The notes beneath the pieces were generated by a model. That model was not told the origin of the DNA. It saw only the letters and a list, made by a program, of their open reading frames with translations, and did no database searches. From sequence record MZ475895.1: DNA of 64,000 bases. One strand, given 5' to 3'. Positions 22,536 to 54,361 of this stretch are shown here, piece after piece. The translations under genes were made by a program, and so were the position numbers. Numbering within the stretch: the first letter of the stretch is position 1; each line of letters begins with the position of its first letter.

Positions 22536-22574
22536 CTAGTCCTATCAGAGTGTGTAACACAATATGATGGCTGT

Positions 22575-22583
22575 TATTTACAG
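22575..22583 (-). promoter_or_regulatory. CTGTAAATA motif upstream of polA
   Basis: 40 nt upstream of 22535, immediately downstream of a terminator. Confidence 0.6.
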
Positions 22584-22596
22584 ATTTAGAAACGAG

Positions 22597-22620
22597 AAAG
22601 GGCAGCCGAAGCCACCCTTT
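22597..22620 (-). terminator. Intrinsic terminator
   Basis: GGGUGGC-UUCG-GCUGCCC-UUUCUC. Confidence 0.8.
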
Positions 22621-22626
22621 GTGTTT

Positions 22627-38445: not shown

Positions 38446-38456
38446 GTAAAAATTAG
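38446..38456 (-). promoter_or_regulatory. Candidate late-type motif CTAATTTTTAC
   Basis: 63 nt upstream of the histone-like gene. Confidence 0.5.
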
Positions 38457-38498
38457 TATAATCCCCGTAGGAATAAACAGGAAATTTCCTAAACATTT

Positions 38499-39578: not shown

Positions 39579-39604
39579 TCTGTTCCATACGTTTTAGTGT
39601 AAGC

Positions 39605-39613
39605 TATTTACAG
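39605..39613 (-). promoter_or_regulatory. CTGTAAATA motif upstream of sbcD
   Basis: 27 nt upstream of 39578, directly after a terminator. Confidence 0.6.
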
Positions 39614-39616
39614 AAT

Positions 39617-39637
39617 AAAGGGCAGCCGAAGCCGCCC
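39617..39637 (-). terminator. Intrinsic terminator
   Basis: GGGCGGC-UUCG-GCUGCCC-UUUAUU. Confidence 0.7.
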
Positions 39638-39674
39638 AATGTTGGTCAGATGATAAAAATTATTGTACAAATAG

Positions 39675-39697
39675 AAAACGCCCCGTTAGGAGCGTTT
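39675..39697 (-). terminator. Intrinsic terminator after 39700..40470
   Basis: AAACGCUCC-UAAC-GGGGCGUUU-UCUAUUU. Confidence 0.65.
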
Positions 39698-39699
39698 GC

Positions 39700-50342: not shown

Positions 50343-50894
50343 TCACACAGGCTGTATGGTAATGATCTGGACGCCTTGTTCATTACGCGACTTGAGAATG
50401 CGGAAGCGGAAGTCTATTGGATAAATCCATTCGAGTTCATCCATAAGACCATCAAGAATCATCTCACGTTCTTCTTCGTCACCACCGAATTCTTTATCAA
50501 GATCAGCAGCCATGATAAGATTGTACGTGCGTTGCCAATAGTTGAAGGCTTTGTTCTTTGGCCCAGGAAGAATCTCCAGCATCGTGTCTGTCTTGCCTGC
50601 CTTTGCAAAACCTTTAGCAGTAGCGAAGTCTTGACTGAACGACAGGTACTTGTTGATCATCACGAAAGGATTCTTAGCCTGCTTAAACAGAGCCATGAGT
50701 TCTTTTTCGTACAGACCACGATACAGAGGCATCTCAGGACGTTCGGGGTATTTAGCGATCAGATCATCAAGCGCAGGGCTGGAGCGATTAGCGTCAATCA
50801 CATGCCCTTTATCGTGGAGCATCGTCCACATAATGTCTTGCTGTCTGTCGGTGTAGGCAGGTATCTTAGCACTGAGGCTAACCATGAGTTCCAT
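50343..50894 (-). CDS. ADP-ribosyltransferase (R-S-E clade, VIP2/Alt-like) with an SxSA leader
   Basis: LYRG, YLSFSQDFATAKGFA, DELEWIYP (ExE); N-terminus MELMVSLSAK. Confidence 0.75.
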   Translation of the reverse strand: MELMVSLSAKIPAYTDRQQDIMWTMLHDKGHVIDANRSSPALDDLIAKYPERPEMPLYRGLYEKELMALFKQAKNPFVMINKYLSFSQDFATAKGFAKAGKTDTMLEILPGPKNKAFNYWQRTYNLIMAADLDKEFGGDEEEREMILDGLMDELEWIYPIDFRFRILKSRNEQGVQIITIQPV

Positions 50895-51590: not shown

Positions 51591-51600
51591 GTAAAATTAG
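51591..51600 (-). promoter_or_regulatory. Candidate late-type motif CTAATTTTAC
   Basis: 32 nt upstream of 51559, after a terminator. Confidence 0.5.
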
Positions 51601-51624
51601 TGTTCCTTAAGACATTTCTGAAAT

Positions 51625-52947: not shown

Positions 52948-52983
52948 GATGCTATTGCCCTTTAGTTTGATGCTTACTGTCGA

Positions 52984-52992
52984 TATTTACAG
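52984..52992 (-). promoter_or_regulatory. CTGTAAATA motif upstream of the clamp loader
   Basis: 37 nt upstream of 52947, after a terminator. Confidence 0.6.
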
Positions 52993-53001
52993 ATTTTAGA
53001 C

Positions 53002-53037
53002 AAAAAGAAAGGACCACATCCAAAATGGAGGGTCCTT
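53002..53037 (-). terminator. Intrinsic terminator
   Basis: AAGGACC...UCCA-UUU-UGGA...GGUCCUU-UCUUUUU. Confidence 0.7.
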
Positions 53038-53088
53038 AAAAAGTCTATCTCTGGTATGGGACAGCTATCACTAGTGGCAACAGGTGAT

Positions 53089-53298
53089 TCATGCAAAGCT
53101 CATCTCCCAGCGGGGCGTCACGCGGGAAAAGAGTTTAAATTCTTCAGGTGGGTTAGACTTGATTTCGTTGATGGCTGCTTCAACGTCATCGTAATCGTGA
53201 AGTCCAGCTTGTACGGTCTGCGTAACGAACGTACCATCTGAATTGATCAAGTCAGCGACGACTCGATAACTTGGGCGACTCTGTTGCATCCTAAACAT
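53089..53298 (-). CDS. Small hypothetical protein
   Basis: 69 aa; AGGAG RBS. Confidence 0.6.
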   Translation of the reverse strand: MFRMQQSRPSYRVVADLINSDGTFVTQTVQAGLHDYDDVEAAINEIKSNPPEEFKLFSRVTPRWEMSFA

Positions 53299-53337
53299 AA
53301 CATCTCCTGAATATTAAACCTCAACGTTCTTGAATTA

Positions 53338-53346
53338 TGTTTACAG
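53338..53346 (-). promoter_or_regulatory. CTGTAAACA motif
   Basis: 40 nt upstream of 53298. Confidence 0.5.
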
Positions 53347-53392
53347 ATTGCTTCGGTCCGTCCTTGCGATCTAAAGTCAGAATAGTCTTAAA

Positions 53393-53639
53393 CTCCAATA
53401 AGCTCTTGTTAGAACGTATTGGAGTCCACCCTGTCAGATGACGGTCGTTCAGGGCTTTCTCCCCGCACACTTATATAGCGCCGTGCGGCAGGCTGCGCTC
53501 GCGAGGTCTTATGTTTTCCACGGCAGGTGGTCCAGGAGGTAGCGTCCTCTGAAAAGATACCCGCCGCACAACAGCCTCGCTATCGGCCAATCAGCGATAC
53601 GCGGTGTTACGCTGAATCGACCTAAATGACTCTGGCCGA
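53393..53639 (-). ncRNA. Candidate structured non-coding RNA (multiple helices, predicted pseudoknot); family unknown
   Basis: ORF-free GC-rich gap with at least five complementary pairs; several mismatches become G.U wobbles only on the minus strand. Confidence 0.5.
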
Positions 53640-53650
53640 GTCGTGTACAA

Positions 53651-53703
53651 AAAAAAGAGTTCGGTCCCAATCAAAAAGATGGCGAAAAAGAAAGGGACCG
53701 AAC
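53651..53703 (-). terminator. Hairpin plus U8 tract (terminator/attenuator) upstream of the candidate ncRNA
   Basis: Perfect 10-bp arms GTTCGGTCCC / GGGACCGAAC, 25-nt loop, followed by UCUUUUUUUU on the minus strand. Confidence 0.6.
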
Positions 53704-53748
53704 AAAAGACACTCAGCGCAAACTCCTTATGCACTGTTTTTGTACTTG

Positions 53749-53758
53749 GGAAAATTAG
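53749..53758 (-). promoter_or_regulatory. Candidate late-type motif CTAATTTTCC
   Basis: Heads the non-coding gap; an AAGGAG element follows about 25 nt downstream. Confidence 0.35.
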
Positions 53759-53785
53759 TGACATTCCCTTTTATTCAGAAAATTC

Positions 53786-54361
53786 TTAGTCGATGGTTAA
53801 TTGCATCTGACGCAGAGTTTTGAGAAAATGTCTGCGTTGGAAAGATTCGATGCGGTACGGATGATCGATATGTTTGTTCCAGCCCTGATTAAATAGCATA
53901 ATGTTGTCGGGCAATTTCTCGGCACCATTCCACTTCGGTTTATCATCTACAAGCAGGTAATTGCCTGCACCATGAACCGAATCAAGGAACGCAATTTTAT
54001 CAGGGTAAATCATTGGACTAATCACATGGAAGTGGTCTATCACGTGGAGAAGTCCGCGCATCGCTAGACGCGAGTAACGAGTCCCAAGTTCGTGATAGCC
54101 GCGATGAGTGCAAACACCAACAGAGTAACCCTGCTGCACAAGATACTCCAGTGTGCCCTTTGCGTACTGACGCATACGCGCATCGAGCATGAACGTCGGA
54201 CTGTTCAGTATCTCACTGAAATGAATACCACCATTCTCAGGCGTAATGTATTCACCTTCACCGATAGTAACTCCTTTGTCAGCGAGTTTCTTACGCATCA
54301 CAGGGTGGGTCTCGAAAAACGTATCATCCAAATCGAAAAAGATTTTCTTTAGCTTTTGCAT
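53786..54361 (-). CDS. HAD-superfamily 5'(3')-deoxyribonucleotidase-like protein
   Basis: IFFDLDDTF, VCTHRG, DK, LLVDDKP. Confidence 0.8.
   Translation of the reverse strand: MQKLKKIFFDLDDTFFETHPVMRKKLADKGVTIGEGEYITPENGGIHFSEILNSPTFMLDARMRQYAKGTLEYLVQQGYSVGVCTHRGYHELGTRYSRLAMRGLLHVIDHFHVISPMIYPDKIAFLDSVHGAGNYLLVDDKPKWNGAEKLPDNIMLFNQGWNKHIDHPYRIESFQRRHFLKTLRQMQLTID

Follow-up and report, generated by a model that had tools for sequence, protein, structure and literature searches.

What is encoded in the longest stretch without a credible ORF within a long, one-directional array of phage genes? The window analysed here, a stretch of 64,000 nucleotides, belongs to the Erwinia jumbo phage pEa_SNUABM_14 (MZ475895.1; MZ475895, 264 kb) and has nearly all its genes on the minus strand, with canonical terminators after many of them. 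A preliminary description of the window had singled out its largest ORF-free gap as the possible site of a functional structured RNA. Indeed, positions 53299-53785 (487 nt), between two genes on the minus strand, are the longest stretch of this kind; long overlapping ORFs extend across the two other gaps that a greedy ORF map suggested. The gene upstream of the gap codes for a product of 191 aa with weak similarity to HAD-type 5'-nucleotidases and polynucleotide-kinase-phosphatases; downstream of the gap are the genes for a 69-aa protein of unknown function and, after it, for a clamp loader (PF13177, phrog_5846).

A gap of around 470 nt occurs at the same position in all the relatives examined, and the 701 bases around the RNA described below, 100% identical to pEa_SNUABM_14, show 67–71% identity, at the same locus, to those of phages Alexandra, Y3, AD1, phB78 and around 25 further Erwinia and Dickeya jumbo phages. 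The homologous gaps share no ORF in a constant position or frame: nearly all the homologs have stops in all frames, and one stop-free frame was found in two of them. From the comparisons that follow, the gap is predicted to encode a strand-specific, conserved, structured non-coding RNA of around 250 nt, on the same strand as the genes.

Folding energy, strand and covariation

The minus strand of the gap folds better than shuffled controls, and the plus strand does not. For positions 53393-53639, the minus strand gave −97.6 kcal/mol compared to a shuffle mean of −80.9 kcal/mol (z −3.18), with none of the 200 shuffles as good; the plus strand gave a z of −0.97, with 32 of 200 shuffles as good. 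The homologous regions of Yoloswag and JA29 had z-scores of −7.7 and −3.7, respectively. The preliminary description had also taken G-U pairs as a mark of the strand, and this holds for the conserved structure, whose paired columns contain 131 G-U and U-G cells versus 25 A-C and C-A cells; the structure is thus that of the sense strand only.

We evaluated compensatory changes in two alignments. In an unfitted MAFFT alignment of ten type A sequences, 89.7% of the cells were paired, compared to 34–45% when the 3' partners were slid, and 21 pairs were changed on both sides, compared to 3–12 for the slid partners; on four of five measures, the conserved structure was reached by none of 500 shuffles. 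In the second alignment, made with a covariance model and comprising 18 sequences (Yoloswag and JA29 among them), 92.0% of the cells were paired, versus 30–45% for slid partners, and 44 of 73 pairs had compensatory changes, a value reached by none of 500 shuffles; this alignment leans towards the model, and the unfitted control covers type A only. Covariation among homologous gaps, which had been put forward as a check on the proposed RNA, is therefore found in 21 to 44 pairs, but it supports a revised fold.

Conserved architecture of the RNA

A series of helices recurs in the individual minimum free energy (MFE) folds of ten homologs, and a whole-gap alignment of 12 phages shows invariant blocks alternating with variable blocks that change in a compensatory way. 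A covariance model, R1, matches the window at 53388-53646 with 149.5 bits. Read 5' to 3' on the minus strand, the features are as follows.

53390-53642, minus strand: core structured RNA ('RNA-2'), around 250 nt, from H0 to H5
53628-53642, minus strand: hairpin H0, GACUC/GAGUC, present in every individual MFE fold
53585-53622, minus strand: long hairpin H1, with compensatory changes in both stem halves
53501-53580, minus strand: long irregular stem H2, its helices 92–100% paired, 16 of 18 pairs with compensatory changes
53463-53499, minus strand: H-type pseudoknot S1/S2, at the same place in 15 sequences of three subtypes
53457-53464, minus strand: linker GGGGAGAA, near-invariant in the alignments, overlapping the 3' end of S2
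53428-53455, minus strand: hairpin H4, 97% paired, seven pairs with compensatory changes
53390-53427, minus strand: terminal hairpin H5, ACUCCAAUA/UAUUGGAGU, its lower stem invariant in sequence

Both arms of H0 are invariant in type A, which thus offers no covariation support for this hairpin. H1 bears a loop of 13 nt, UAACACCGCGUAU (53609-53597), that is invariant in the alignments. Separately, the Y3-like phage pEp_SNUABM_52 contains a 10-nt tandem duplication in the H1 loop (L010, around 1680-1700), which doubles part of the GUAACACCGC motif; this duplication is apparently tolerated by the loop, which is otherwise invariant.

The basal helix of H2 joins 53580-53575 with 53506-53501, its apical loop contains GCUACC (53543-53538), and its 3' internal loop at 53512-53507, AUAAGA in the window or GUAAGA, is invariant; Yoloswag and JA29 keep the stems of H2 with different sequences. 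H4 carries a conserved loop, GA-CCGUCA-UC, at 53446-53437. The core shared by the subtypes includes the terminal hairpin with invariant arms ACUCCAA/UUGGAGU, and the top pairs of H5 show compensatory changes in the JA29-type phages.

Three other candidates were discarded. An RNAalifold consensus from the MAFFT alignment paired an arm of H1 with the S1 region, and was rejected given that the H1 hairpin and the pseudoknot both covary; a CCCU/GGGG closing helix, seen in some MFE folds, is absent from the window and from the Y3 and SNUABM_22 types; and strings resembling the rrn boxA and the lambda boxB occur in some lineages only, within covarying stems, and were considered coincidental.

A local pseudoknot and the fold proposed earlier

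We searched 15 sequences for the best H-type knot in the 62 nt following the (G/A)UAAGAC motif, and found it at the same place in all 15, with only 0–2 of 40 shuffles per sequence scoring as well. In the window, S1 is formed by AGCGC (53499-53495) with GCGCU (53481-53477), and S2 by CCGCAC (53488-53483) with GUGCGG (53468-53463). Nine different sequences were found for S1 (e.g., AGCGC/GCGCU, ACGU/ACGU, GGGCGCG/CGCGCCU, GGUGUG/CGCACC and AAGUGCC/GGCACUU) and eight for S2 (e.g., CCGCACG/UGUGCGG, CCUGCACU/AGUGCAGG, UCCCUCU/AGGGGGA and UCCCAC/GUGGGG). Loop 1 comprises 1–2 nt in 13 of the 15 sequences: a single nucleotide for the majority of type A, and two for the Yoloswag and JA29 types; loop 2 has 0–3 nt, loop 3 is A/U-rich and 6–9 nt long, and S2 has 6–8 bp. 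In R2, a covariance model of the 3' domain, the pseudoknot strands of Yoloswag and JA29 are not in register, and therefore the evidence for the knot across subtypes rests on the table from this 15-sequence search.

The preliminary description had instead proposed an interleaved pseudoknot between a helix A and a 15-bp helix B, whose 3' strand, B', would switch to a downstream GUGCGG. All the complementarities it listed exist, including helix B with its 15 pairs, five of them G-U, the two copies of CCUGCCG and the two of GUGCGG, and helix A (GCGAGG/CCUCGC) is real, being the basal stem of H2. There is also a pseudoknot, but it is the local S1/S2 knot, and the interleaved A/B knot is not conserved. 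In the unfitted MAFFT alignment of ten homologs, only 43% of the helix B cells are paired, a background level compared to the 33–48% of slid controls; the earlier fold as a whole has 69.6% of its cells paired in this alignment and is reached by 34–176 of 500 shuffles. Helix B requires a 3-nt insertion found only in the SNUABM_14 group. In the conserved fold, the 5' strand of helix B makes up the 5' side of H2 and its 3' strand spans two others, the 5' strand of S2 and the 3' strand of S1; both strands of helix B have covarying partners elsewhere. It is fully complementary in the window and in near-identical relatives, where it would compete with conserved strands of H2 and of the pseudoknot, and forcing it in the window costs just 6.7 kcal/mol (−99.1 versus an MFE of −105.8 kcal/mol). 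Helix B might thus be, at best, a lineage-specific suboptimal alternative, and we find an interleaved pseudoknot that switches with the downstream pairing scarcely credible.

The elements of the proposed switch find another place in the conserved fold. The pairing of B' with the downstream GUGCGG is real, but it is the conserved S2 and not an alternative state; likewise, the inner copy of CCUGCCG is present but belongs to the conserved H2 and is not a switching partner. Finally, an outer hairpin UCGGCCA/UGGCCGA had been described that is not conserved; this pairing is ambiguous because GGCC is palindromic, and covariation favours that of the 3' GGCC with an internal GGYC, forming H1.

Comparison with RNA families and novelty

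None of the 4227 models in Rfam 15 matched the window at gathering thresholds, and a cmscan of positions 53000-54000 with E values up to 10 retrieved nothing on the minus strand inside 53390-53642. Likewise, the loci of Yoloswag, JA29 and AD1 yielded nothing relevant with E up to 1, so that neither gathering nor permissive thresholds assign a family to the window or to these three homologous loci. ARAGORN detected no tRNA or tmRNA genes in the window. Both programs therefore agree with the earlier failure to match the gap to tRNA, tmRNA, RNase P or HDV-like ribozymes. There is one unpaired GGA in the core, within the linker, and another in the loop of the upstream hairpin, the remaining GGA motifs of the RNA being inside the H5 stem, which does not correspond to a CsrB/RsmB-type sponge; nor does the RNA resemble a type III antitoxin RNA (ToxI-like), since it contains no tandem repeats and has no toxin-type neighbour gene.

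No known family matches by sequence or by structure and, by these comparisons, the RNA family is previously undescribed. Neither the genome papers nor the literature searched mention an RNA at this locus or report a structured RNA in the PaBG-related group of Erwinia and Dickeya phages. To our knowledge, few structured RNAs besides tRNAs are known in jumbo phages. The six helices, covarying pseudoknot and invariant loop blocks amount to a complexity usual for ribozymes, riboswitches and RNP scaffolds. In all, the sense-strand fold, the covariation among homologs and the lack of a tRNA, tmRNA, RNase P or HDV-like match support the original proposal of a functional structured RNA.

Distribution among jumbo phages

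Homologous gaps with the conserved structure occur in around 20 distinct phage sequences, which define three subtypes. The RNA is syntenic, between the HAD/phosphatase-like and the clamp-loader genes, in Alexandravirus, Sasquatchvirus, Yoloswagvirus, Salmondvirus and a few uncultured relatives; it heads a clamp loader/SbcCD cluster in every genome carrying it, and its locus persists while small flanking genes come and go. R1 retrieved distant, full-length and syntenic copies in Yoloswag (L039:1798-2037, 51 bits) and in the Dickeya phage JA29 (L040:2599-2800, 32 bits). A pattern search of IMG/VR with three universal motifs found further sequences of the Yoloswag type (L042 and L061) and of the JA29 type (L054, L049 and L060), and L110 is another member of the family. 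H2, GUAAGA, the pseudoknot, a GGGGAG linker, H4 and H5 are common to the three subtypes, and the 5' hairpins vary; none of the subtypes lacks the CCG(U/A)CA loop either, which belongs to the 5' hairpin in the Yoloswag type and to H4 in type A and the JA29 type.

Pattern scans of viral, metagenome and genome collections gave many chance matches, and the true members all belonged to the same phage clade, none of them being cellular. PaBG, the next relative according to its clamp loader (33% identity), has neither the gap nor a match to the covariance model, and the same is true of remoter phages. Across these sequences, the RNA occupies a single conserved genomic location within one clade of jumbo phages of Erwinia and Dickeya.

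Two annotations at this position deserve mention. In Yoloswag, the 5' hairpins and H2 coincide in part with gp204 (L039 1743-1907), annotated as a hypothetical protein of 54 aa; this gene was probably called in error, and its annotation would be corrected by the description of the RNA. PaBG has, in place of the RNA, a DUF2829 gene, PaBG_00184 (L041 2710-2943), between its HAD-like and clamp-loader genes; DUF2829 is the family of the Thoeris anti-defence protein Tad2, and the slot may be an accessory or counter-defence position.

Putative transcription signals around the RNA

The following signals were identified on both sides of the RNA and, for one of the motifs, elsewhere in the window.

53751-53782, minus strand: promoter-like element P1, TTTTCTGA/CACTAATTTT with a spacer of 15 nt; the blocks are conserved and the spacer varies
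53714-53736, minus strand: small hairpin 'hp', with a stem of 6 bp and NGGAG at the core of its loop, AUAAGGAGUUU
53649-53703, minus strand: terminator-like hairpin read from the sequence, with a 10-bp G+C-rich stem (53703-53694 with 53668-53659)
53340-53347, minus strand: promoter-like element P2, TCTGTAAA, past the RNA and ahead of the 69-aa gene
22577, 39607, 52986, 53340 and 59696, minus strand, and 62772, plus strand: copies of TCTGTAAA near start codons

P1 includes ACTAATTTT at 53759-53751, just past the stop codon of the upstream gene, and a conserved TTnTCTGA block 16 nt upstream of it. ACTAATTTT occurs three times in the window (38449-38457, 51593-51601 and 53751-53759 on the minus strand), always in intergenic DNA and on the gene strand; there is a P1 look-alike at 51594-51624, and two of the copies share an upstream TTTC(A/T)GA block with the same 16-nt spacing. 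ACTAATTTT could thus represent a second promoter-like class, in addition to TCTGTAAA. The latter is found seven times in the window, and six of these copies are 29–42 nt upstream of a start codon, in the orientation of the gene, including one that precedes the clamp loader; it is probably a phage promoter class. In several gaps (e.g., 22536-22626, 39579-39699 and 52948-53088), TCTGTAAA closely follows a terminator hairpin, two of which have a UUCG-type loop.

The terminator-like hairpin immediately 5' of the RNA has a 25-nt loop and a run of eight U, and was missed by a simple terminator scan because of its large loop. Its position is conserved in type A and in Yoloswag, with different stem sequences. 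The stem of 'hp' covaries across 11 variants that keep the NGGAG loop. On its own, the region 53649-53782 (minus strand) looks like a separate small-RNA or attenuator module, composed of the promoter-like element, 'hp' and the terminator-like hairpin. The loop string GGAGUUU was also observed within H5, whose 3' arm contains it and whose 5' arm contains a complement, ACUCC.

The order of these signals differs among subtypes. In type A and in the Yoloswag type, the promoter-like element is followed by 'hp', the terminator-like hairpin with its U-run and the RNA; the distance from this hairpin to the RNA is 5 nt in type A, and there is a further spacer of around 120 nt in Yoloswag. In the JA29 type, a promoter-like TCTAATTT directly precedes the RNA, and a strong terminator with a run of nine U is found around 40 nt after H5, followed by the TCTGTAAA motif and the clamp loader. 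In the window, H5 is followed by around 45 nt, the promoter-like motif and the 69-aa gene; whatever the type, there is a separate TCTGTAAA promoter-like motif for the next gene, past the RNA. H5 itself does not qualify as an intrinsic terminator, with a base rich in A-U and G-U pairs that is followed by UUUAAGA.

No sequence between the terminator-like hairpin and H0 fits a sigma-70-like promoter and, therefore, expression of the RNA in the Alexandra and Yoloswag types would need read-through, processing or an unrecognised promoter. Phage-encoded sigma-like factors have been described in this group (PaBG paper), so promoter types that we do not recognise are possible. In a different part of the window, a protein of 183 aa (50343-50894, minus strand) is similar to the C-terminal part of phage RNA polymerase ADP-ribosylases (phrog_832, E 2.6e-13), which hints that the host RNA polymerase might be modified by the phage.

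Possible roles of the RNA

Our preferred reading, which we consider about evenly poised between right and wrong, is that of a stable trans-acting RNA whose loops and pseudoknot would bind a partner. The RNA would be made as a discrete transcript, with a promoter-like ACTAATTT element upstream, as suggested by the TCTGTAAA copy between the RNA and the next gene and by the terminator that follows the RNA in the JA29 type. It would then act in trans as a stable folded RNA, with the invariant loops and the pseudoknot offering surfaces to be recognised by a partner, most likely a protein, from the phage or the host; the hairpin with the NGGAG loop and the terminator, which lie between promoter and RNA in the Alexandra and Yoloswag types, would gate the amount of full-length RNA. 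We infer the action in trans mainly from the layout of the JA29 type and from general experience with complex folded RNAs. Against it, the Alexandra and Yoloswag types have a terminator-like hairpin immediately upstream of the RNA, and the invariant stem of H5 together with three GGAG elements could point to alternative pairing in cis. When complements of the loops were sought elsewhere in the window as possible targets, those of L1 were at chance level and those of L4 were uninformative. A bolder proposal is that the RNA founds a new functional class, either catalytic or RNP-forming, or as a host-takeover or counter-defence factor that binds a host or phage target directly; we hold this to be possible but rather doubtful. 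The RNA can be tested directly in phage-host pairs that are culturable in the laboratory.

Control of transcription in cis is the main alternative, although an unlikely one: the nascent RNA, or the upstream NGGAG hairpin, would alter RNA polymerase or bring in a factor and thereby promote read-through of the many intrinsic terminators in the array that includes the replication-gene block, in the way of the HK022 put RNAs and the Bacillus EAR element. The RNA lies inside a one-directional gene array with terminators after many genes, it heads the clamp loader/SbcCD cluster in every carrier genome, and it is preceded, in type A and the Yoloswag type, by a promoter-like element, a hairpin with a conserved loop and an atypical terminator with a large loop. 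However, the terminator of type A precedes the RNA, which cannot help at that site, and downstream genes have their own TCTGTAAA promoter-like motifs, so that read-through is not obviously needed. The RNA is also far larger, with around 250 nt and six helices, than known antitermination RNAs, and shows no similarity to the EAR model or to other Rfam families, although put possibly has no Rfam model.

A riboswitch-like or protein-binding leader, with a sensing domain that sets the expression of the adjacent genes, seems improbable to us. The arrangement of the JA29 type is indeed the classical one, in which a promoter-like element is followed by a complex fold, an intrinsic terminator and the gene, and the highly conserved unpaired nucleotides cluster in loops and junctions. 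Nevertheless, this order is exclusive to the JA29 type, the terminator of the Alexandra and Yoloswag types being 5' of the fold; we found no conserved alternative pairing that would couple the fold to a ribosome-binding site or a terminator; the RNA is separated from the gene, in all the types, by a distinct promoter-like motif; and no known riboswitch model matches.

Slightly less probable still is an element acting at the DNA level by folding of the displaced sense strand, whether as a replication origin or as a site of single-strand initiation or primosome assembly; a single-strand origin was the main alternative contemplated in the preliminary description. The RNA adjoins replication genes, its position after a terminator in type A is one where transcription should be low, and the strand bias alone is not decisive because folded single-stranded DNA tolerates G-T wobble. 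Yet an origin gains no positive support. There are no iterons in 53250-53850, where the only direct repeat is a 10-nt pair (53774-53783 and 53820-53829) outside the RNA, and no inflection in cumulative GC skew; the core RNA is not A+T-rich, with a G+C content of 0.55 compared to around 0.47–0.48 in its surroundings. Besides, the G-U bias fits a sense transcript, a compact H-type knot with crossing loops of 1–2 nt and many G-U pairs is typical of RNA, and a promoter-like element and a terminator bracket the RNA in the JA29-type phages. Lastly, a ribozyme acting by self-cleavage or processing to free itself from read-through transcripts would agree with the complex pseudoknotted fold, the invariant junction nucleotides and the absence of an obvious promoter directly upstream in type A, but it is very improbable given the simple H-type topology of the knot, the lack of a match to ribozyme families at E up to 10 and the absence of hammerhead, twister or pistol core motifs.

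Comparison with known systems

HDV-like ribozymes, tmRNA and RNase P RNA are, like the RNA of pEa_SNUABM_14, pseudoknotted and of the same broad size range or larger. HDV-like ribozymes fold into a nested double pseudoknot (P1, P1.1, P2, P3 and P4) with the cleavage site 5' of P1; here, cmscan found no HDV-like match, and the conserved knot is a simple H-type (S1, S2, S1', S2') and not a nested double knot. The strings GUAAGA..CGC and AACUCCA resemble E. coli M1 RNA, presumably a short chance resemblance that we keep as a lead only.

The HK022 put RNAs and the Bacillus EAR element mediate processive antitermination, EAR being an intra-operon RNA that contains a pseudoknot. They resemble the RNA described here in being structured RNAs within co-directional, terminator-rich gene arrays, in the case of EAR also pseudoknotted; in contrast, our RNA matches no such model, is larger and, in most members, has its nearest terminator upstream.

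The pseudoknot is also comparable to that in the gene 32 mRNA of T2 and T4, a translational operator whose geometry in T-even phages combines a very short loop 1 with a second stem of 6–7 bp. Both are phage H-type knots with a loop 1 of 1–2 nt, a second stem of 6–7 bp and an A/U-rich loop of 6–9 nt crossing stem 1. Unlike the gene 32 operator, however, the knot here is embedded in a six-helix RNA instead of the 5' end of an SSB mRNA leader, and what follows it is H4 and H5, not an unstructured A/U tract running into a ribosome-binding site; between the RNA and the next gene there is a promoter-like motif and, in JA29, also a terminator.

GOLLD and ROOL, orphan Rfam families of large structured ncRNAs from phages or prophages, have roughly 500–800 nt. 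The RNA of pEa_SNUABM_14 matches neither of them in sequence or structure, is much smaller (around 250 nt), is not beside tRNA genes and ranges over a single clade of jumbo phages; it has in common with them, nevertheless, that it is phage-borne and highly structured, with conserved loops, a fold supported by covariation and no obvious protein partner encoded with it.
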